Assembly (NCBI GenBank): GCA_038496445.1
Contig: JALMLS010000417.1
Coordinates: 1-64,000, forward strand
Length of the DNA: 64,000 nucleotides
Direction of reading: 5' to 3'
Source of the DNA: Trichosphaerium sp. ATCC 40318
Taxonomy: Eukaryota; Protista; Tubulinea
Part shown: piece after piece, positions 5,862 through 42,316 of the stretch
How the letters are laid out: the number at the start of each line of letters is the position of its first letter
How positions within the stretch are numbered: position 1 is the stretch's first letter
The notes under the pieces: model-generated
What the model was told of the DNA's origin: nothing
The model's database searches: none
The model's input: the letters and a program-made list of their open reading frames with translations, nothing else
Position numbers and translations under genes: made by a program

Positions 5862-7123
5862 ATGATGATAACAAGAAGCAAACGGCGGCGCAGAGCACCT
5901 GTTACGCCTGTACTAGTGTAAATAACCTATTTTCCTTCTTTTTCTGTAATTCTTCACGCAAATACCGATTTATTAACTTCTGACGCGTTTGTTATAGGAA
6001 TACGCACTCAATATTCGATTTACCGTCGGAAATAATAAAAGAAATTCTAAATTTCTGCCCTTCGACTTTACCAACAGCGCATTCATGTCAATACCTTTAT
6101 AAACTCATTGTAGAGCATATAGGGTATAGAAGAATCTATATAAAGACAGAAGAAGACTTTAACGTCCTTTCAAAAAGTCCTCTACTGAAGAACACGTTTG
6201 TTTACTGCCATTTCGAAGAGGCAAGGAATAGGCATATAAAAAAACTATCAGGTATCCAAAGACTATGTCTTAGGAAATGTAAGAAAGTAACAAATATGGG
6301 TATAAGATCGTTATCTGGTATACAATTTCTTAATATAAGACAAACAACAAAGATAACTCATAAAGGACTTCGTGCACTTAAAGGAATACAAACACTTTTA
6401 GTTTATGGATCAAAGAGTCTAACAGATGAAGGTCTTAAGGCTATTTCAGGTGTACAAAAGATAGATATCGGTCAGTGTGAGAAAATAACGGATGAAGGTA
6501 TACGTCATTTATCAGGTGTTCATACAATAGATCTTTACGGTACATCTGTTTCTGAGAAAGGACTTAGAGGTATTTCAGGTGTTCATACAATAAATCTATC
6601 TTATTGTAAGTCAGTTACAAATGAAGGTGTCAGAGCTCTTGCTGGTGTTTATAAGATAAATCTCACTGGCTGTACTAGAGTATCAGATGAAGGCATTAAG
6701 GCATTAAAAGGTGTACATACACTTAACATTAGCGGACTTGATATCACTGATAAAGCGATATCATCACTTGGAGGTGTTTATGATATTGAGCTCTCCAATT
6801 GTGAAAACGTCACTGATGTAGGTATTAAGGCGCTTAAGGGTGTTCATACTATACATATTCGTCATTGTGATAAGATTACTGATGAAGGTATTAAAGCTAT
6901 TGCTGGCGCACATACGATTGATATGACTTTTTGTTCTGCTATTACAGATGAAGGTGTTAAGTCACTTGCTGGTGCTCATACTATTTGGATGGATAGGTGT
7001 TTTCATGTTACTGATGAAGGTATTTCTGCTCTTAAAGGTATTAAAAAGATAAGTGTTCTTGGGTTGACAAAAGTAACAAAGGAAGGTTTGTCTGTGTTGC
7101 AAGGTGCAACAATTTACAGTTGA
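5862..7123 (+). CDS. F-box + leucine-rich repeat (AMN1/LRR_CC-like) protein, one 5' intron
   Basis: The frame stays open upstream of the 6296 ORF: SIFDLPSEIIKEILNFC (F-box). It is followed by about 11 repeats of 24 aa (xxITDEGIKALxGVHTIxL). Short first exon MMITRSKRRRRAP from 5862. Confidence 0.85.
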
Positions 7124-12861: not shown

Positions 12862-14471
12862 TCATTCCTTCAATTGACCATTTTCATCCCACTCTTTTGG
12901 ATTGTGTTGTGGCTCATTGTCTTTAAAATATATACGCGATTTCATTTGCCCGGTTTTATGATACTCTATTTGTTTGCCATCTTGTTTATCATCCTTGAAG
13001 TGATATTGTAACCATAACTGATCATTGTCATACCACTCTTTGTGTTCACCTTCTCTCTTGTCATCCTTGAAGTAGCAATGTATACGTAAGTATCCATTCT
13101 CATGCCACCACTTGAATTCACCATCTCTCTTGCCTTCGTTAAAATGGCAAACTGCTTTTTCTTGACCATTCACATAAAAGTCTTTTGTTTTGCAACACTG
13201 ATTATTCTTGTATTTATGGTGACATTTTAGTTTTCCGTTTTCATACCATGCTTTACCTTGATCTTTATATCCTTCATTGTAGAACAGTTGAAATTTTAGC
13301 TGTCCATTGTCATACCATGTTTTTTCTTCACAATGTTTCTTGCCGTTTTTATAGGTGGCTAGGTGAACTAGTTGACTGTTTTCATTCCATGTTTTAGAAA
13401 TACCTTGTTTATTGTCATCTTTATAAAATACTTGGTACTCTAATCTACCGTTTTTATGCCACGTTCTACCCTCACCTTCATTTTTGCCATGTTTGTAAAA
13501 GAAAAGAGATTTTAATTGACCGTTATCATACCACTCTTTTTGTTCACCTTCTTTCTTGCCATTTTGTAAATGACATTGTTGCACTAATTGACCGTTATCA
13601 TACCACTCTTTATATTCACCTTCTCTCTTGTCATCTTTGAACTGACTCTGTTGCAATAACTGACCATTGTCATACCATCGTTTGAATTCACCTTCTCTCT
13701 TGCCATCTATCAAATGAATTTGTGCACGAGACTTACCATTCTCGTACCACTCTTTAGCTAGGCCTTCAATCTCATTGTTTTTGTAATAAAAAAGATGACT
13801 CATTGTACCATTCTCATGCCATTGCTTTGATTCTCCTTCTTTCTTGTCATCTTTGAAGTAGGTTTGGTTGTGTAGTTTACCACTCTCATACCAATATTTA
13901 GCAACACCATGTTTCTTCCCATCTTTATAATAGCACGTTTCTGAAAGAACACCATTCTTGTACCAGAACTTGCATTCCCCTTGCACTCTTTTATGATTAT
14001 CAAAGTAGCATTGGACGGATACCTGACCATTTTCATAAAACTCTTCGTATAATCCTTTCTTCTGTCCACTCCGGTAAAGTCGCTTTTTAACGTTTTTGCT
14101 GTTTTCATAAAGCACCTTTACAAAAAAAACCGTTTCAACACGTGACTGTTTGAAATAAACCTAAAATGTCGTACCTCTTCTATGTCTGGTGCAAAATTAC
14201 CGCCACTGACAACATGTTCAGTGGAGTAGCACCGTAAAGGATAATACCGAAGCATTGTTCTTGAGCTATGTATACAGCTGCAATGCGAACCATACAATGG
14301 CAATATTTTAGTCAATCTTATTTTATGCTTGTAATGTGATTCTCGCATCACCGCATTGGGCATTTTACAGGTTTTATGCATCTTAGGATGCACGTTAACT
14401 ATTGTATATCCTAGTAAGCTGTATCAATACCATCTTATTCTTTATTGTTAAATGTACATACGTCGTAACAT
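12862..14471 (-). CDS. MORN-variant (MORN_2/YwqK-like) repeat protein with spliced N-terminal extension
   Basis: 417-aa exon of about 16 repeats of 24 aa (YKDGKKEGExKxWYENGQL). Two 5' exons: ATG at 14471 (MLRR|), then an intron 14461-14411, then YTIVNVHPKM...RCYSTEH...DIEE| joined to VLYENSK. Confidence 0.85.
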
Positions 14472-15447: not shown

Positions 15448-18400
15448 TTAATCATTAACAGCAACTGCAGCCTCAGAAGGTTCTAGTTCTATTTCGCTAT
15501 CATCTTGCTTTGTATCATCTTTAACAACTACAGGTGATTGCGTTCTCTTAAACTTCTTTGTAATACGTCTAATCCTACAACAAAGAATGCAAGCAACTAT
15601 CAATACTATAACGAACAATAACATAAAGATAACAACACCAGCAACCAATCCTCTGTTCTGCTTGTTCTGTATGTACTCTATTATAGTAGCTTGTCCTGTA
15701 GGTGCAACACTTGGTGCTGTTGTGGTATCAGGTGTATCACCAACAGATCCTTCTATACTCAAGAAATCTTCAACACCTGAAACCTCAGGATCATTTCTAT
15801 CAGAACGTATTTGACTAATTCCTTCAGCGTTTTTGGCAATAACATCACGAAGCAATTGTTCGTATCCAACACTTGACACTTTGCTCTGAGCGACTTGAGT
15901 TAAAACGTATCTAAGAGATAGCGTTAGTTACAATAGAATACACAAGAGGTATTGATGATTAAACACGTACATTGCAAAGGCTTCTGTTGCGATACCAGCT
16001 GTTCTGTGTGGTATCAAATTTTCATCAAAGATCATGTATGAAAATGTTGATAGAGGCCATGTGAGCTCACCTGGTCTGTTTACTAAAGTAAAAGCAGCCC
16101 AGTTGTCTCTTGATCTTGGAAGACCTGTATGAATAGCCTCAGTTGCTGCATCTTCAACAGAAGCTTCACTAAACAAGTATTAGCTGCCAGTTTTTTTTGA
16201 AAAAACTTTGCACAAAAGAACGTACTCTAGGGCAACCATCTCGCCGTTTTGGTTTTCTATGAGAGCATCTTGAAGTCCATTTAGTCTTGCAGTACCATAT
16301 TCAAGATAACCTTTAATGAGACGAGTAAGTACGAAATGTAAATAAGAAAGACTTTAATAAACGAGAAAGAAAACAAGATGTAAATACCGATTGAGTATGG
16401 GGTATTCTTGATTACATCAGCAACTCCTTGATCTTTGTAAGCTCCTATTGTAGATAGAGGGAACTCTGGAGCGTGTTCAGGGCCACCTTAAAGTGAGTGT
16501 AAGTAAAATATGACGTTTTTACAGGCTGATCTCGTGTAGCATTTTTAACTTACCAACTCCTTTACCAAGACGCCATTGGCTGGTAGGTGCAGCTTGTGAC
16601 AAGTAATCAGATAGTACATAAGTAGATCCTGAAGCATCAGCTCTTCTTACAACAACAATATCCTTATTGAAAGAAGCCAACCTAATTGTAAAAATCAAAA
16701 AAAAAAAATAGTTTTAGCAGAAGGAAGAAGGACTTACTGAGGGTTTAAGCTATTTATGGCTGGATCGTTCCATCTTGTTATGACACCAGAGAAAATCCTT
16801 GCCAATACACTAGCTGTCAATTGTAGCTCGTGGAAATAACCAGGAATATTGTGGGAAATAGCAACAGCACCCATAACAATAGGAATATGTAATGGTACTC
16901 TAAACAAGAAATTAGAGTTTTACGAAAAACGAAAGCAAAGTTGTTGTAACTCGCCTTGCTTTATCAACTACTTCGTTTCTTTGTTCTGTAGTCAAAGGCG
17001 CGTCACTAATACAAAATTGTACTTGATCGTCTATGTACTCTTTAACACCTCCACCAGATCCCTATCACAGTTGTAAGCCAAGTTTTAGCATAAACCGTTT
17101 TTGTGATGTTTCTTTTTTTTTTTGGAAAACGCAGCTTTGTGGCTAAACAAAAAATTGTTTTGGCGTACAATAACATCATAATTGATGTAGACTTCTGTTG
17201 GCGATTGGGAAGAGAATCCAGCAGTCCAAATATCCATGATGTTCTTAACAAAACTTGATCCACTTGCTTCAACAGTCACTCCAGCTCTAGGCCATACAGC
17301 ACCATTTGGTACTGGATCTTCTAGTGGTACTTTGTAGTATAGTTCAGAATCTGCTCCAGCAGCCAAGGTAATGAGGTTCAAAGTGTCAAGATTGTAGCTA
17401 GTAAGCTAGGGAAGAAAAGAGTAAATACAAGAAAAGAAAGATCCTTGGTTAAAACGTACCAGTTTTGGTAGAGGCTCTAACCCTTCTCCAATGCTTCTTT
17501 CTTGTGCGTTCTCGTTCATTACAAATCTTAATAATGCTTGTATTACAGCACCACCGTTACGAATATCTGACAAGTCTTGGTAAACCAAAGTGTATGCAAA
17601 CGAAGTAATAGGCCATGTGTTTGGTCCCTTTAAGTTAACTAAAGAAAGTCCATGCCATGACTCCTCTCCAAGAGGAATAATGTCATCAGCAACAGCTTGT
17701 TCAGCAGCAGAATTTACAGGTATTTTTCTAAAACAAAAAAAATCAATAAGAAAGTTCATGATTTCCACGATTTCCACGTGATAAGTTATTTTGAAGTTAT
17801 AAAAGTTGCGTACCCCATTTCAACCAATATGCCTTCAGCGTTGATCATACGAGCGAACTATTTAGAATCATTAGTATACTTTTAACATCCATCAAGAAAA
17901 CAAACAAAAAAAAAAGCAGAACTCTGTTGATACCTTTCGTGCAAACCTGTTTGCAGTGCCAAGATCAACATAACCAAAAGAGTAAGGTGTATTAGCAACA
18001 TAAGTTGCCATATCATCTGCTGTTTCAACTTGAGGAACATTCGCAGGCCAAGGAGTGTTAGGATCTAGTATATCTCGTCAACAACATGGCAATTTTTTTT
18101 GGTAAAATGTGTAATCCGTACTTTGTAATGCTGCATTGAAGTATGGGGAAGCTTTACTCAAATACTCAATGTAAAGAGAGTGTATGTTATGTTCAACACC
18201 ATTAGCATATGTGACAAGTTTTACTGTTTCACTGAGTGTAGCAAGAGTTGGATTAAGATCAACCAAAAGTTCGTGCTGCCAACGGAGAATAGAACCAGCT
18301 TGAATCCTAGCAAGGATATCGGCGTTCACGTTCTAAAAACCAAGTTAGTAAACATTGGTAAGCATCTTGTTATTGCGAACGTACAAGATCTCCATCTAGT

Positions 18401-21400
18401 TCAGGGATGTTGTAAATGATACCAACAGCAAATAAACCAGTTGGTAGTGTCAATACAGGGTAACCTGCATTCTTTTGTCTATCCCAAAGGTTTTGTGGTA
18501 GAGGTTGCTCTGTCATTGCGAACCTAACTGATCTTTGCATAAAAGACTCAACAGAGAGAGTAGAAGGTTCTACTTCTAACTCAATGCGGATATCAGCATC
18601 AGGTACTTGAGCGATGAATGTGTTACTCCAGACCTAAAAAAAGGAAAGTTAGAACCTTTCATGGCTTTTTTTTTTTTCCGTTCTATACTCACATTCCACA
18701 AGTCGTTCAGAGTAGGTGAGGTTGTACCCCTGACCTCTATACCATAGTATGGTTCTGGGAATGGCGGTTGGTAGTAGTATAGTGGTTCTTGGTCTTGTGG
18801 AAGTAAGATTGAATCAATTGAAGCTTCATTTGACTCAGCAAGCTATCACAGAGAATTAGTTTGATGTCTATTTTTCCATGCCGTACAATCTTTGGAATTC
18901 TTTCGTAACCATCTAAAATAGCACGTGATTGAGCTGCATCTGACATAGCGTATCTAAGGACCATTGTCAATAAAAGACAATAGGCAGCCAAAAAAAAACA
19001 CACCTCAAATAACCAACAAGTGCTGCAGCTTCTTCTGCCCGATGTGTTTGGTTGTAATCAACAATATAGTACATCATAAACGAAATAGGCCATGTCTCTG
19101 CACCAGCTTCATCAAGTATTTCAATATTTTCCCAAGAGTCTGCAGGTGAAGGTAATCCTCTTCTGAAAGCAACATCCGCAGCAGATTCAATATCAGCCTC
19201 GCTAAAAAAAACCAGTGTTAGTCTTCCTTATGAGTCACATGGGTAAATATTCAAACGCACGTGATACTGACAAATACGCCTGCTTTGTTTTGTAACTCAG
19301 CGGTTAGGAAGTCAAAACCTCTTGGACCTCTATAGTCAACCTATTGCTTAAAAGTTTGTATTGCGCACAGAAGTTGCTCAAAAATAATAAAAAACCAAAA
19401 ACTTGTTTGCACTCCGTACGTAGCCAATGGAGTAATCAGTGGCTTTGATTATTCTAGACATACTATTTTCCGAGTCAGCAATAGTGTCGTTGACTGGCCA
19501 ATTAATAGCTAAACAACAGTTACTAACTGTTTGATTGAAAATCTGAGACGACTTACTTCTTCCTGTGCCAAGTCTCCATACAGCTCCAGCGGCCTCATCG
19601 AGGTATCTTGTAAACATATCTGTACTTGTAGATGCATCAGATCTTACCACAACAGTTATTGCAACATTCCTAGCTACGAGTGCTAGTGTATTCAAATAAG
19701 CGAAAAACGAAGAGCAAGGGTGAAAGAAGGTACAACGTACAAGGATTAAGCTCAACCAATTCAGCATCATTCCAACGTGTGATGTCTCCTTGGAAAATCT
19801 TGGCTGCAATTGAAGCTGTAAGTTTGAGAGGGTCTGATAAAGTTCCAGCAGGAAGGGTATATCCAATAGCAACACCACCCATGATAGCAGGTATGTGCAT
19901 AGGCAACCTTAAAGGAAGGAAAAAGTTAGAACAAAATAACGAGAGGTGTTGACTTATTACCTATCTTGTATGATAAGGCTAGTACGTTCAGCAACGGTAA
20001 GTGGATATTCGGTACAATAGAAGTTTGATAGATTATCCATATATTCTTGTTTACCTGCAGCGCTTCCCTTTACGAATTTTAGTACAACTTGAATAACAGA
20101 TCAAATAGCGTACTTTTTGTTCGTAGTCAACGATTACTTTAGCGAATGATTGTGACTCAAAAGCGTAGTTCCAAGTACCAAACAATCTATCTGGGTACAC
20201 TGATCCACTACCGTAGATCGAAGCACCATCAAACGGTGGAGGAAGTGGAACAGAATAATAAGAATCTGATGTAACATTTGCTGGTAGTTCAATCTGATCA
20301 AAGGTGTCTTCATTAACAATGATGAAATCATCTCTCAAGCGAACGAAATTCTCTGCATCAACACGTGTTTGAAGAGTTTCAGAATTAGCAAATCTAAGAT
20401 ACAATATAAGCACAACATAGCATGTTATGGATTTGGTTGCCATCAAAGCAAACAAGCAAGTAAGAAATATGGTATTTTTTGTTTTCTTTAATTCGTACTT
20501 CAAAAAGCCTGCAATAGGTCCAGCTGCTTTGTTTTGTCTCAAATCAATGAAAGAAATCGCATAGATTATAGACGAGATTGGCCAACTGAATCTGCTTCCT
20601 CTATTGATAAGATTAGTACCAGCCCAATCAGATGATCCATCAGGAAGTCCATGCAGTGCTAAATCAGCACTAGCAGCTTGTATAGCCTCAGCACTACAAA
20701 GAAAGTTATGTTTGACTGTTTAGACACGTAGTTAAAACCCAAAAAAAGTCACGTGTCACGTGCTTTATGAAACAAAAGAATCAAAAAAAAACCGCTTTCA
20801 CATTACCTTATTGGTAGCCAAGTGCCGTATGCGTTTTGTACATGAACTTGTCTAAAAAAATACTTTCTTGTAGTATCATATCTAACAAAACCAAGAGAAC
20901 CTTCTGTTCTTTGTATCTCTGTAGCTATATCATCTTCACCAACACTACAAATAAAGTTCGAGCTTGTTAAGAAAGGAAACTCAGGTGTCTGTCCAATACC
21001 ACCTACAAAAGGCGTCAACTTCTTCATCATGCATAACACGTGATTTTTAAGTAACAAATATTTGCGTACCTCTTCCTACGCCAAGACGCCATGATCCAGC
21101 TGCAGCACTTGCAAGGTATTGAGAGAATAGTAGTGTTTCAGTAGAAGAAACACAAGGGACTACTACAGAAATCTGCTTGTTTGAGCTTAAACCTGGGTTC
21201 AAAGACAATATCTCAGTTACAGTCCATACATCCAAGAGTCCCTCAAATATTCTAGCAATAAGCGAAGCTTAAAAGTATTAGTCCAACGCATTCAAAAAGA
21301 GAACTCTACTTACGAGTGAGTCTAAGATCTCCTGCGAAGTCAGATTCAGGTATGTTGTGTACTAGAGCTAGGCCGTCAAGCGCAATTGGGAAGTGTAAAG

Positions 21401-24400
21401 GTTGTCTATAAAGATATTATTTAGTTTAGAATATATGATATAAGAGTACGTACAGATTGTTTCTTAACAACTCTTGGAATTCAAACGTTTCAAGAGGTTC
21501 GTCTGTTATTGTCAATTCTGAAGTACCCAAAACGCGATCATTAACAGCTTTTTCAGCCGTCTAATGTTCATATTAGGAAATTGTAACAAGAGTATATGTT
21601 ACGAATGTAACTAAAGTCAATAGTAACCCGAAAACTGAGAAATTTGAAAAAAGGTGCCTTCATCACGTGATGTTGTAAAATAAATATAAAGTATGTATTT
21701 GAGCACAAAAATAATCAAGGTACTCATAAGTAAACAACCACGTGCCGTTTCTAAGTATTCCACAGATATCGGTGTATGAGATGTAGTCTCGAATAATTCT
21801 GTTATAGACTTCAACATACTTGTCGCACGTGTTGTTCCCGTTACTAACATTTGTTCTCGTAGAAAGTATGAAAGTGAATATGGAGTTGGGTTGGTAATAA
21901 AATCAACAGAATCGCTATTAATAACCTTCAACAAAGGTGGTGGAGAAGTCAAGAAGAATCGACTTGGTGTTGCTTGAGCAAGATTTTGATTAATGTATGA
22001 AAGGAAAGCCTTGATAGCAAGTTGTTGAGTCGGACTAACGCATGAATTGTCTTCATCTGCAATATTGTATATCATAAAAGTCATTGGCCAAGAGACTAAG
22101 AAAACTAATTAGAAACCAATAAAGAAGAAACAAACTTTCTGCAGGCTTTTTTTTGAAAATAGTTGAATTCAACTTTTTGGAGGAAACAACATACAAAGGC
22201 CATTGGCATCCGTAATACTGACATGAGCCCAATCTTGGTATCCATCTGGTATTATACCTTCCAGTACACCTCTAGTAGCAGCATCGGAAATATCGGACTC
22301 TCTACAAGGAAGTTAGAATACGTAAGTTTTTGTATTGTTTTGGTTTTTCGTACGTTGGGTAGACATAGTCTCCTTGTTTGTTTCTAATATTAGCCAACTT
22401 AAGGTTAAGTCTTGCAGCTATACTATGTTCTACAACACCAATAGATCCTCTTACGTTTTGCACAAATTCTGCTACTTCAATGTCATTACCATGCTCGCTA
22501 TTGAACAAAGGTCCAGATTCTGGGTCGATATCTATAATAATGAGAAAAATGAAAAACACAGCTCTTTAAAAAAAATCGTACCAAATACTCGCCCATGAAC
22601 CCAGTAGTCAGATGCCTTTGTCAAATAGTCACTCATAATCCATGTTGCTCCATTTGGTCCAGAAAGAGCGTATATGAATTCATCAGAGGTCAACATTGGG
22701 TTTGGATCAAATCCTAATATGAAAAATTAAAACAAAGAAAAAACAGCTAAATAGATAAGTCAGTGTCGTACCTTGACCGTCATCGTGTAATCTTGGGTCG
22801 TTCCATTGCGTAATATTACCTTGGAAGATAAGGGCAATCATGTCACTTGTGAGGTTCAATGCTTGTCCACCAATCTCATCAAACTGCAAGTTGTATACCA
22901 AAGTAATGGCGCCAAGTGCAAAAGGTATATGAGTTGGTGCGCGGTTATCAAGTCTATCTAAATGGAATTGTTGTAAAGGTATCATGGATGTACTAAATTC
23001 GCTATTGCACGAAATATAGTCGTCAAGGGCAGTAAGAGAGTTCTATACAATGTAAGAAAGTAATTTGAACCAAAACTTAAAGAAAAAAAAAAAAAAAAGC
23101 TAAAAACAGAGCCGGCTTTTTTGGTGTATGACACGTGCCTTTGTTTCGTAAGAGATTTTGATAGGATTTAACGATTGAGATTCGAAACCTTTTATCCAAA
23201 TATCCATTTCTCTTTCAGGAAAAGAGCTACCACTAATATGAATCAAGGTAGACATAAAATCCATGTAATCGTATCCTGAAGTGAAAAAAAATTAGCAAAT
23301 CTTTTTTGAATCAAAAATACGAACCTTCAGCTGTTTCGATGATTTTAATAGCGTCATTGTTAAAATTCCTTACAGTGAAAGGTAGTGGTTCAAGACCTTC
23401 TTCATCAGCGAACTGTTGAGCGTAATTTGTGTTGATAAAACTAATGTGACGTTAAAAATCACGTGGGAGGTTTAACATTAATACGTGCCTCAAGAACGCA
23501 GTAATAAGAGCTCCATCACGTCCTTTTCTAAAAGAAGAGTATGAGTCGTGCGTTGACGTTCTTTGGATTATTTAAAATACGTACGCTCGAAGATCAGAGT
23601 CAATAATGATGTAAGAGAAGGTTATCATAGGCCAAGAATCTGGACCAGGCTCATCTACAAGAGAAACAACTGACCAATCATCAGTTGGAGATGGGAATAT
23701 TGCCACTGCCTCTCTGGCCGCAGAATTGATAGTAGATGCACTATAAAGCAGTTCATGTGAGATAAATCATTCAGAAAAACAAAATTTATGATAAAAACGA
23801 TAATAGAAGTAAACCGAATTTTTACGAACCTAGCCGAGACGTAGTTGCCATCTTGGTTTCTGAGTTTAGCCAACCTTACTTCCTCCTTCTGAGCAAGTCC
23901 AAATCGCTCATAAGATATAGCTCCATTAACGTTTTCGACAGCAAGAACACCGCCTAAAAAAAAAGTCATTTTTTTACTTTATCTCTTCTTGAGGTGGTTT
24001 TGTAGACCTCTTTTATACTTACCTCCTGTCCCTGTTACTGGTACAACTTCTGCAAATGCATTAAAAGGCCAAGAAGGATCTAAGAAGAGAGATATGAGTA
24101 CTTCAAAAAAAAACAAATCAAAAAGACTTACAGTCGGATTTTCCGAGTGTCCAGTTGCCTGAGGCAGCATCAAGATAGTCAGTGAACAAGTATGTTATGT
24201 CGGAAGGAAGTTCGCGGATAACAACCGTTATTTTCATGTCGGGCAGATTAAAATTACCAAGGTCAGAGAGCCTTGTATCATTCCAATTTGTTATAACACC
24301 TTGAAAAATTTCTGCTAGAACATGTGCAGTTAATAGCAGCTCTCCTTCCCATCCAGACAATCTGTATGGTACTACAACAGCACCCAGGGATACTGGTAGA

Positions 24401-24995
24401 TGGAATGGAGACAAAGAGGGATCCCTATACAAACGTTGGTACGAGAAAACCGTAAATGTTGTAAAAGTAGAAATTCAAGAACAACAAAAAAAAACCGTAC
24501 TCTCTGTTGTTGAAATAACGCGATTGCTCTGCTGTGCTGAAAGGCCTATCTGACACCGCAAAGTCCACTAGCTCTTCTATAAAGAGATCTTTTCCTCCTA
24601 AAGTATTTTAAGTTATTTACAGTTGTGAGACATCGAATACAAGCCAAGAAACCAAAAAAAGCGTTTTTAAATAATCACGTGAACAGACATCAAAAAGTTT
24701 GGCCGCAAAAAAATTTTGTGGCCGCAACTTTGGTGCCACGTGTCAGTCGTACCTACAGAACCTCTTGTAGTGAACTCTACTATCGCATCCTTAGGTGATT
24801 GCTCGGGAAACTCTTCGATCCACTCTAATCGAAGTATAAGTACTCGGTACTGCGTACAATCACAACGTTACCTTCCATAAGTTCTGATACTAGCGTAGAT
24901 CCTGCTCCAGTTATAATCTGTATATCCTGGCCGGTTATCGTTACGACCATTATGGCCATTACGCTTAGCAAAGCTAAGAACGATATGGCTTTCAT
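15448..24995 (-). CDS. Type I membrane protein with six tandem PstS (phosphate-binding protein, PBP2 fold) domains, about 2,200 aa, >35 introns
   Basis: Signal peptide MKAISFLALLSVMAIMVV; six copies of the PstS pattern (G-x-G-S/T ... P..GAV...Y.. L.LT...A.IF.G.IT.WND ... WP ... GSIGY ... L.N..G..V ... WP.....Y); domain junctions are continuous or spliceable; C-terminal TM GLVAGVVIFMLLFVIVLIVACILCC and a short acidic tail. Confidence 0.88.
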
Positions 24996-26404: not shown

Positions 26405-27833
26405 TTACGTGGAATGAGATGATTTAACTTTCAGCCCAGCTCGTCTCAGCTTACGTTCAACTAATATCTTGACAACAGCTTGAATATTACCATTATGCTG
26501 CTTGAGAAGTCTCATACTAGTCTTATTGACCTTGAAACCCATCTCACATAACTGACTGAACTGATCTTCGTAGCATTCAATTTCACTTTCTGATACCTCA
26601 TCTTCATCTGATGTACTTGAGCTTGCATCATCTAATTCAGAAACAATCTTTACCATAAGACGTGGACCAAACCTTCTGCCTGACAAAGACAATTGATACG
26701 AGCAAGTGTAAGATCCAGCAACTTGATTAAACAAACTTGTTAGCAAGAAAAAAAAAAGAAAAATATGTAGCTTTAATAACGTACTGAGAGGTGCCATAAG
26801 TGGGATACTAACATTAGTAGTTTCACCAGGAAGTACCTCCTTATTTAACGTTACATTTTTAGGAGCAGATAACAAGTTATAAGCCCTGAGACTAACGATT
26901 TTTGTTGCTAATAGGGAGTTAAACAAAGAATGTTTCAATTGCTTTCAAGACAATACGTACCAGTAGGCCACGCAGATCTCCCTACATTCATCAACCGCCA
27001 TGTCTTTGTAAAAGCTGATCCTGCTCTAAACACTGTTCCATTCTCGGCAGTCACGTGGGAAATAAATCTAGCAACATATTTACGAACACAACCATTAGTT
27101 CCTCTTTCTCTTGCGGTTGTTGCTGTTCCCCTTGACTTCTCTCTTAGTTCCTTATTCTTCCTCTCTTTAATGAGTAACTTTCTTTCCATATTGAGCTGCT
27201 TTGCACGCAGTCGAAGACGAGCCTGGTCACGTCTAAAACAAGAAATACTCAGTCATTTGCATGAAAAACAGAAAATGATTAAATTTCTTACTTCACTTCG
27301 GCTATTTTCATGTTAACTTCTTCTAAAGAAGCGAGATACTCTTCTTCAGAGCCAATAGAGCTTTCATCAGAATCTTCAGGTTCCATTTCATGCTCGGGTA
27401 TTGGCACGCGCTCATCGCGTGATTCAGCAGCATCGCACTGCATTTTTACTGGTTTTGGCGTGGTTTTTGTTCGGTTTGGTGCTCTCGGGGAAGCTTGGAA
27501 TCGTGGAGAGTCATTCCTGGCTTCAGGCAATGCTGTTGTTACCAAAAGGCGTAGGGGTGTCGTATCCTGCAAAGCTAGTTCCAAGTCGTTGTCACTGTGG
27601 GCGTTAGTGTTTCTAAAATTGACAAGTACCAATACGAACCAAGAGATAGTTATACTGTCTCCATCCTCATCCTCGTACTTAATAGTGACGTCCTCTCCAG
27701 TTTGAAAGCCGTAAATATCGAATACAGTACCAATAAGTGATTCAAACGACGTGCTATGAAGCTCAAAGCGTCTGATATCATCACCGTGATACGCTTTACA
27801 TGTTACTATCGCTAAATGTGGTTTACAAGCCAT
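26405..27833 (-). CDS. NBR1/p62-like autophagy receptor: PB1 + FW (NBR1 Ig-like) + UBA
   Basis: PB1 (CKAYHGDDIRRF...IKYEDEDGDSITIS.DNDL); FW (ARFISHVTAENGTVF.AGSAFTKTWRLMNVG..AWP...FGPRLMVKI); UBA (QLCEMGF.....MRLLKQHNGNIQAVV). Confidence 0.85.
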
Positions 27834-41247: not shown

Positions 41248-42126
41248 TTACACAGCATAGTTATACGATTTAACCATTTCGTATCTAATACCCAAGGATT
41301 CAACAGCTTCTTTTGTTATCTTACTTCGTTTCCCTTTGATTCTTATCGTCTTGAGTGACTTCATGTGCTTCAAAACCGAGTTTGTTATGTGTTCACAACA
41401 GTATAGTCCTAGGTTCTCAAGATTTACCAAGTGCTGTAGTCCTCTTTCTGATATTTGGTGACAATTATCCAACGTGAGGTCTTTGACATTTGTCAAACAC
41501 TTAATACCATCATCTGACATATCAGTAATGCTCCCGCGCATATAAACATGAACAGTGTTGACATTGCAAAGATATTTGAACCACGAGTTTTTTGGACTTA
41601 TCTTAATCGTGTGGACATCTCCAAGTGCTTTTATTCCCTCGACAGAGATATACTTACAATCGAAAAGGTTTATAGTGTGTACACCTTTTAAAGCTTTTAA
41701 AGATATATCTGTTACTCTAGTTCGTGTCAAGTTGATACTATGAATGTTTTCCGGTAGTAATCGAAGTATATCTTTGTCTGTAACACCTGAAGCGCCTAGA
41801 TTTATACTACGAACGCCAACAAGGCAAGCCAAGTCGCTTGGAGATAGAATCATTTTCCATGTTGTTTCGATTTCTGTGTTTTTAAGCAAAGGGCTGCCTT
41901 TCAGAACTTGACAATCTGACGATGTGATTAATGTGATCGTATTAAACCCAATGTTATGCCGAATGATGTCGTTAAACATGTGAGAAACTGAAGATGCTCT
42001 AATACGTTGTTCCCTGTTTAGAAAGCGTAGAATAAGCGTCAAAACTTCTGGTGGCAACGGCGGTGGAGGACGGTGTACTACAAGTTTGAAATCTTTCGTC
42101 GGAAAACTTTTCATGCCACGCGACAT
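41248..42126 (-). CDS. F-box + LRR protein, intronless; paralog of 5862-7123
   Basis: LPPEVLTLILRFL F-box; shares the VL..SPLLKNT motif and ALKGVHTINL repeats with the 5862 gene. Confidence 0.87.
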   Translation of the reverse strand: MSRGMKSFPTKDFKLVVHRPPPPLPPEVLTLILRFLNREQRIRASSVSHMFNDIIRHNIGFNTITLITSSDCQVLKGSPLLKNTEIETTWKMILSPSDLACLVGVRSINLGASGVTDKDILRLLPENIHSINLTRTRVTDISLKALKGVHTINLFDCKYISVEGIKALGDVHTIKISPKNSWFKYLCNVNTVHVYMRGSITDMSDDGIKCLTNVKDLTLDNCHQISERGLQHLVNLENLGLYCCEHITNSVLKHMKSLKTIRIKGKRSKITKEAVESLGIRYEMVKSYNYAV

Positions 42127-42316
42127 AAGCACGCGACACGTTCTGTCGTAAAGTAAATATCGAGTTGTTTATACAGTACTTTAACTGTGAAGCACGTCGT
42201 TGTACTTTTTAGTTTGCAACGTAAAATGGAAACAGTTTCATCGTAAAAAAAACAAGTCAAACTAATTCTGGATTCTCTTGTCGTTGAACAACTTTAAAGA
42301 ACAAAGAAAACGTTAT

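Follow-up and report, generated by a model that had tools for sequence, protein, structure and literature searches.

Six tandem PstS domains on a predicted membrane-anchored protein of Trichosphaerium sp. ATCC 40318, with one complete phosphate pocket beside the membrane

A split gene transcribed as one unit

Positions 1 to 64,000 of contig JALMLS010000417.1 (assembly GCA_038496445.1) of the protist Trichosphaerium sp. ATCC 40318, the 64-kb stretch analysed here and referred to as the window, contain a minus-strand gene whose product carries six tandem copies of PstS, the phosphate-binding protein of prokaryotic Pst ATP-binding cassette (ABC) transporters. Positions 24995 and 15448 are exactly the ATG and the stop of its coding sequence, and the region, at about 37% G+C, is eukaryotic DNA. 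Six-frame reading of the minus strand from 25.1 to 15.4 kb finds about 40 short coding pieces, the translations of which show the PstS pattern six times; the corresponding domains are numbered D1 to D6 from the N terminus.

The gene model was obtained by enumerating frame-keeping GT/GC-AG introns between these coding pieces and was then fitted to spliced public contigs from runs X1 to X4 (three studies), which were compared with positions 17360–23359 of the window. The model has 37 GT-AG and four GC-AG introns and no internal stops. A 6,772-nt contig of X1 and a 4,470-nt contig of X2 cover the exons of D2 to D5, continuing past both ends into D1 and D6, and the joints in contigs of X3 and X4 are identical to theirs. 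All contig joints read CT..AC on the plus strand, that is, GT..AG on the minus strand. Within 17360–23359, the model agrees to the base with the contig joints and the record coordinates; moreover, the X1 record coordinate equals the coding-sequence position of the model plus 16 at every listed point, and hence the remaining joints in this part are also confirmed. Contigs of all three studies bridge the domain borders from D1/D2 to D5/D6 within one spliced molecule, which shows that the gene is transcribed as one unit.

Several structural details were established by the contigs, namely a 44-nt exon in D5, the introns 19509–19556, 20394–20498 and 18634–18692, and the donor at 19419. The 44-nt exon is visible through the spliced contigs only and is not findable from sequence alone. 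The outer parts of the model (24995–23360 and 17360–15448) draw on splice-site consensus, the reading frame, inter-domain homology, and a contig of fitting length, with the donor of the last intron placed at GTACGT (15970) by consensus alone. The four GC-AG introns (minus strand; 23441–23488, 23043–23138, 21561–21745, and 16900–16954) have the donors GCACGT or GCGAGT, which mirror the GTACGT donor usual in this genome; two of these introns lie within 17360–23359 and agree with the contig coordinates. The first exon encodes the signal peptide and the start of D1, and the last encodes the end of D6 together with the stalk, transmembrane helix, and tail.

Read without splicing, the region contains many stops in its six frames, and in three places coding pieces of the same frame are parted by a single stop, as would be the case for several neighbouring genes or for a decaying pseudogene array. 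This candidate explanation was rejected and can be regarded as almost certainly wrong: the three in-frame stops are intronic (confirmed or by consensus), single contigs span the domain borders, two exons run unbroken across such borders (22095–21746 from D2 into D3, and 20393–20114 from D3 into D4), and the spliced frame is free of stops. For 17360–23359, it is refuted. The original prediction had named separate transcripts as the observation that would count against a single gene; instead, the contigs show one molecule from D1/D2 to D5/D6.

One further contig, record 11 of X4, is 1,003 nt long and lies on the plus strand. Only 111 nt of it match the window (23164–23274, the first D2 exon), and the remainder has no resemblance to it. 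An assembly chimera, an antisense RNA, and a paralogue are all conceivable sources of this contig.

Domain architecture and phosphate pockets

Hydropathy identifies two hydrophobic segments only, at residues 1–19 and approximately 2162–2186. As predicted from its sequence, the product is a type I membrane protein comprising a signal peptide, six full-length PstS domains, a stalk, one transmembrane helix, and a 42-residue tail (Table 1). A Pfam search with the tail returned nothing above threshold. The layout first proposed for the locus, in which one gene encodes a signal peptide, six PstS domains, a transmembrane segment, and an enzyme-free tail of about 40 residues, is thus upheld by the 2,228-residue model, the contigs, and the tail length.

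Single exons match the Pfam family PBP_like_2 (PF12849) and the NCBIfam family TIGR00975 (PstS) at successive profile positions, with best E values of 2.7e-20 and 1.8e-14, and the exon-wise matches tile profile positions 2–164. Exons also match the solved PstS structures 4LVQ (PstS3 of Mycobacterium tuberculosis), 2Z22 (Yersinia), and 1IXH (Escherichia coli). When the exons are joined, all six domains align at positions of about 30–343 of a bacterial PstS profile, scoring 122–263 bits (local script); this profile was built from 46 single-domain PstS matches that are presumably bacterial. Each domain aligns with the whole mature E. coli protein (about 320 residues) at 22%–30% identity, and the domains are 24%–36% identical to each other. 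Conservation across five or all six of the domains is found at 55 columns, a good number of which are core positions of the E. coli protein; the fold is thus kept even in those domains without a pocket. The DING signature is not present, as the mature N terminus reads QDIQIITGAGS and contains no DINGGG; the best solved relatives are classical PstS proteins.

Each domain can therefore be aligned over its whole length with the bacterial proteins (E. coli 1IXH, 2Z22, and 4LVQ), D6 with the full set of phosphate contacts. Unlike bacterial PstS, which is free or lipid-anchored, the Trichosphaerium protein has six copies in one chain, is encoded by a spliced eukaryotic gene, is anchored by a transmembrane helix, and has just one complete pocket, the other five being incomplete. 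Every domain is strongly acidic: isoelectric points range from 4.2 to 4.8 and net charges from −14 to −30. The linkers between them are short and rich in proline and tyrosine, and the pattern YY-x(1-3)-P occurs at the D3/D4, D4/D5, and D5/D6 borders.

In E. coli PstS (1IXH), the phosphate contacts are Thr10, Ser38, Asp56, Arg135, Ser139, and Thr141, together with the backbone of Phe11 and Gly140, with Asp137 pairing with Arg135. Pockets were compared as strings of the residues at positions 10, 11, 38, 56, 135, 137, 139, 140, and 141, which read T F S D R D S G T in E. coli (Table 1). In the alignment to this protein, D6 keeps nine of nine positions, with two threonine-to-serine changes. The likeness is equally clear in HMMER alignments with solved PstS proteins, in which VVRRADASGST of D6 faces VVRRADGSGTS, and GSGGG...ISDAPL faces GSSGG...ASDAPL. 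The pockets of D4 and D1 are partial; Arg135 is absent from D2 (leucine), D3 (proline), and D5 (tyrosine), and further changes affect Asp56 in D2 (to methionine) and Ser38 in D3 (to alanine). The motifs listed in the original prediction are all present as described: GSSF, GSGGG, SD, and RRADASGST in D6, RSDASTST in D4, and RELPSDIT in D1, with the motif lost from D2, D3, and D5. Scores against the bacterial profile fall in the order D6 > D1 > D4 > D2 > D5 > D3 and so broadly parallel the retention of the pocket.

With pockets that range from intact through half-worn to worn on a common fold, the protein provides a natural series in which to study the loss or change of ligands by binding proteins. 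In D5, three former phosphate positions are now occupied by glutamate (56), tyrosine (135), and histidine (139). All three residues commonly coordinate metals, and the D5 set recalls the origin of transferrins from proteins that bound anions; this likeness is speculation only.

In the 64-kb window, similarity to PstS is confined to 15.8–24.4 kb, hence to this gene, and scans for tRNA and Rfam families over the same 64 kb were empty. Downstream lies an open reading frame for a 417-residue MORN-like repeat protein (12862–14115, minus strand), and upstream are PB1-like and UBA-like pieces in the style of p62/NBR1 (26405–26938 and 27288–27833, both minus strand). Leucine-rich-repeat proteins with a GVHTI-type repeat are encoded at 6296–7123 (plus strand) and 41248–42132 (minus strand). 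None of these neighbouring reading frames has an evident link to phosphate.

Table 1. Features of the six-domain PstS gene (positions in the window; pocket strings follow the order of positions given in the text)
Feature	Position	Strand	Remarks
Whole coding region	15448..24995	-	42 exons, 41 introns; coding sequence 6,687 nt, 2,228 residues
Start codon and signal peptide	24933..24995	-	residues 1-21
D1	23256..24929	-	residues 23-366; 241 bits; pocket partly worn, T L S D R L S D I
D1 motif VVIRELPSDIT	24193..24225	-	
Predicted D1/D2-border intron	23276..23324	-	49 nt; X1 contig continues past 23359; X3 has a loose end at 23324
D2	21860..23255	-	residues 367-713; 150 bits; pocket lost, S F S M L G N G A
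D3	20231..21859	-	residues 714-1068; 122 bits; pocket lost, T R A D P V S T E
D4	18750..20230	-	residues 1069-1416; 216 bits; partial pocket, V Y S E R D S T S
D4 motif VVVRSDASTST	19621..19653	-	
D5	17286..18749	-	residues 1417-1776; 131 bits; pocket lost, P T S E Y N H N I
44-nt exon in D5	17814-17857	-	contig joints 17727/17814 and 17857/17934; flanking introns of 76 and 86 nt
D5/D6 intron (last D5 exon to first D6 exon)	17406..17459	-	54 nt, GTACGT...TAG; joint 17405/17460 in X1, X2 and X3
D6	15805..17285	-	residues 1777-2110; 263 bits (highest); complete pocket, S F S D R D S G S
D6 motif ASGSSF	17250..17267	-	equivalents of Thr10 and Phe11
D6 motifs GSGGG (Ser38) and ISDAPL (Asp56)	16993..17061	-	HMMER alignment to 2z22 residues 37-63
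D6 motif VVVRRADASGST	16621..16656	-	Arg135, Asp137, Ser139, Gly140, and Thr141 (as Ser); HMMER alignment to 5wnn and 2z22, residues 128-157
Acidic stalk rich in Ser/Thr/Pro	15652..15804	-	residues 2111-2161
Single transmembrane helix	15577..15651	-	residues 2162-2186; ends in a membrane-adjacent Cys-x-x-Cys-Cys cluster
Cytosolic tail	15451..15576	-	residues 2187-2228 (42 residues); basic residues first, then an acidic cluster that includes Ser

Origin of the array and its counterparts elsewhere

Introns record part of the history of the array. An intron at alignment column 253 (phase 2) is common to all six domains, one at column 40 (phase 0) is found in D2, D3, D4, and D6, and one at column 324 (phase 2) in D1, D3, D4, and D6; other positions are common to two or three domains. 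These shared positions and phases show that the array grew inside a eukaryote, by internal duplication of an intron-bearing unit. In the domain tree, D1 groups with D2, and D3 to D6 form a second group. Once the longest branches are removed, D1–D6 constitute one clade in the best tree, albeit with weak support (54).

The nearest named single-domain relatives are bacterial PstS proteins of Geobacteraceae and Tepidibacillus, with about 34% identity when whole domains are compared. PstS was thus likely acquired from bacteria, perhaps long ago, and later multiplied, with donor and date left undecided by the tree. Hence, the original proposal of a horizontally acquired PstS that later expanded is supported as to its bacterial relatives and its growth by duplication, and the per-domain phylogeny that it envisaged yields the single clade of D1–D6 but does not settle the donor. 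An exhaustive profile search with the 97-residue D1 exon returned 2,353 proteins at E ≤ 0.001, none of them more than 51% identical, so that neither the protein itself nor a close orthologue is in the collection searched. Likewise, a metagenome scan for an orthologue found only PstS loci of 44%–50% identity, presumably bacterial.

The premise that PstS is always a single-domain protein in prokaryotes does not hold: proteins of 711–769 residues with two PstS domains, both intact, occur in Candidatus Viridilinea (P0001), in a metagenome-assembled genome of Brocadiia (P0003), and in a third entry (P0010). Nor is the array singular: the databases contain similar arrays from several eukaryote lineages. 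A signal peptide followed by three to five PstS domains and a transmembrane segment is found in Mesostigma viride, in volvocine algae, and in the EukProt protein g2114.t1. The Mesostigma protein, Mv02212, has three to four nearly identical PstS domains; g2114.t1 has 1,802 residues; and PBP_like_2 proteins of 1,247–1,411 residues are present in Volvox, Gonium, Tetrabaena, Chlamydomonas incerta, and C. schloesseri. A multi-PstS protein of 1,127 residues occurs in Symbiodinium. Metagenome contigs of 6–16 kb (L002–L004) carry an intronless gene for a 1,747-residue multi-PstS protein (P0172) that is 60% identical to g2114.t1.

The Trichosphaerium protein resembles those of Mesostigma, Volvox africanus, and g2114.t1 in its signal peptide, tandem PstS domains, acidic or Ser/Thr/Pro stalk, single C-terminal transmembrane helix, and short tail; among the volvocine proteins, this layout was checked for V. 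africanus, the rest being recognised simply as long proteins with PBP_like_2. Unlike the members of this group, D1–D6 group with each other and have a different pocket signature. The Mesostigma/volvocine/g2114 clade (SH-aLRT 100) excludes D1–D6, so that common descent with it is not indicated, and most or all of its copies read T N S D/E R L/K S S S at the pocket positions. The domains of each protein mostly cluster together in the tree, which indicates that the array design arose repeatedly. Six is the largest number of domains seen in any of these sequences, and a single canonical pocket beside the membrane was seen here only.

Other eukaryotes join PstS to larger membrane bodies. Chromosphaera perkinsii has four PstS domains, an Ephrin_rec_like domain, and a TRP-like multi-pass region (P0008), and Entosiphon sulcatum has four PstS domains, DUF7630, and a TRP-like multi-pass region (P0004 and P0005); such proteins are possible phosphate-gated channels or transceptors, and no published account of them was found. 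In Rigifila, two PstS domains are combined with an ANF_receptor domain and about eight transmembrane segments, a body of the class C G-protein-coupled receptor (GPCR) type. Two PstS domains sit on a 7tm_3 body in P0047, and P0012 is another 7tm_3 fusion. PBP_like_2 heads on 7tm_3 receptors have been reported in Plasmodiophora (PMC4815078) and in a chytrid (PMC3251606), and a GPCR survey of social amoebae includes the PstS domain in its abbreviation list (PMC10445921). With the Chromosphaera, Entosiphon, Rigifila, Plasmodiophora, and chytrid proteins, the Trichosphaerium array shares a bacterial-type PstS placed outside the cell, often in more than one copy. Unlike the TRP-like and GPCR arrays, it has one transmembrane helix, no channel or seven-transmembrane part, no match to 7tm_3, and PstS domains of another clade. 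An odd pairing is that of P0126 (1,360 residues), in which two PstS domains accompany WWE and PARP catalytic domains and several hydrophobic segments, so that a binding domain of the cell exterior is combined with parts for ADP-ribosylation.

A full-text search of the literature, where 'PSTs' also abbreviates paralytic shellfish toxins, yielded only GPCR fusions and one Chlamydomonas expression table, and no account of eukaryotic membrane proteins with tandem PstS domains as arrays. A Chlamydomonas PSTS gene (Cre01.g044300) is listed there as induced by PSR1 over-expression and by phosphate stress, and is taken in that report for a subunit of an ABC transporter (PMC10413257).

Phosphate capture and its alternatives

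The reading favoured here, tentatively and at a little under even chances, is that the predicted protein is a tethered device for capturing phosphate or handing it on. D6 would bind orthophosphate with high affinity and a closing-clam movement directly above the membrane, and would then either pass the phosphate to a carrier in the plasma membrane or bring it into the cell as the protein is endocytosed, much as diatom phytotransferrin does, or the binding proteins that Gram-positive bacteria and archaea keep tethered. D1 and D4 may add weak phosphate sites, and D2, D3, and D5 would serve as a rigid acidic stalk or shield and not as phosphate binders. In favour of capture, independent eukaryote lineages keep the same layout of signal peptide, PstS array, and transmembrane helix. 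So too may count the reported induction of Chlamydomonas PSTS with the PSR1 regulon, along with the arrays of about 1,400 residues in close relatives.

Known systems offer partial parallels for such a role. In prokaryotic ABC importers such as GlnPQ, two fused binding domains are joined to the permease or encoded beside it. The Trichosphaerium array is similar in having tandem binding domains held at the membrane, the membrane-proximal one being best placed to dock; here, no permease is known. Transferrin and phytotransferrin descend from binding proteins, and the present protein resembles them in using a type II binding-protein fold as a membrane-bound catcher of nutrients and in its duplicated lobes. 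Unlike them, it belongs to another subfamily with another ligand and shows no evident endocytic motif in its tail, making this a working analogy only. The diatom phytotransferrin ISIP2a is reported to be taken up by endocytosis (PMC7972479).

A number of observations weigh against capture. The 64-kb window holds no PstC, PstA, PstB, or other partner, and the tail, as read from the sequence, has no tyrosine-based or di-leucine uptake motif. With one good site per 2,228 residues, the protein would be an expensive scavenger. The position of the intact copy also varies between proteins, the membrane-proximal copy being worn in Chromosphaera and the best-kept copy of Volvox being the outermost; hence, the membrane-proximal place of D6 is suggestive and not a rule. 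Finally, the Chlamydomonas PSTS gene is tied to the arrays of about 1,400 residues by name and relatives, not by a checked accession.

An intact site adjoining the membrane would equally suit a phosphate sensor or co-receptor, in which closure of D6 alters contact with a membrane partner, such as a transceptor carrier, and the tail or the partner signals. The basic stretch, acidic serine cluster, and membrane-adjacent cysteines of the tail could be modified in such a role, and PstS has repeatedly been used as a receptor head in eukaryotes (P0047, P0012, Plasmodiophora, and fungi). However, the protein has no signalling domain and no known partner, and five of its domains would be superfluous; a sensor, the main rival to capture, is unlikely. 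Quite unlikely, in turn, is a scavenger of several ligands, in which the worn domains took on other anions, organophosphates, or metal ions, as in transferrins. Such a role is consistent with a fold core kept in six of six domains, with pocket residues that are replaced rather than deleted (glutamate, tyrosine, and histidine at three former phosphate positions of D5), and with the retention of Arg135 and Ser139 in D1 and D4; but it is read from residue types alone, conservation of the new pocket residues cannot be judged for want of orthologues, and strongly acidic surfaces speak against polyanions. The acidity of all six domains argues against general polyanion binding in particular, and the earlier suggestion of polyphosphate or phosphorylated surfaces of prey as ligands for the worn domains finds no support.

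Alternatively, the array could be mainly structural, a long, rigid, and acidic protein of the cell coat or of adhesion for which PstS supplied the building blocks, the D6 pocket being a remnant. This would fit the six domains of about 340 residues on short Pro/Tyr linkers, with YY-x(1-3)-P at three borders, as well as the incomplete pockets of five domains and the low isoelectric points of the domains. Yet D6 has retained every pocket position whilst its sister domains drifted freely, which points to selection on binding, and a mainly structural role is decidedly improbable. Tethered phosphate capture or hand-off remains the favoured account of the protein.

Textbooks ascribe phosphate uptake in eukaryotes to secondary carriers (PHO84/PHT, PiT/PHO4, and Na/Pi symporters), and high-affinity phosphate-binding proteins are regarded as a prokaryotic device. 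It is conceivable, if unlikely, that membrane-tethered PstS arrays, built independently in several eukaryote lineages, amount to an unrecognised form of high-affinity phosphate capture in eukaryotic microbes, the worn domains of the six-domain version having acquired new ligands; if true, the arrays would parallel the transferrin/phytotransferrin cycle, with phosphate as the cargo, or would hand phosphate to secondary carriers. The gene described here is an expressed eukaryotic case, with six PstS copies on a predicted membrane-anchored surface protein, and similar arrays occur in streptophyte and chlorophyte algae, euglenids, an ichthyosporean, dinoflagellates, and CRuMs, some of them on channel-like or GPCR parts. 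The protein offers a specific candidate for capturing or sensing phosphate in phosphate-poor seawater, and such arrays may represent an overlooked route by which eukaryotic microbes capture or sense phosphate.

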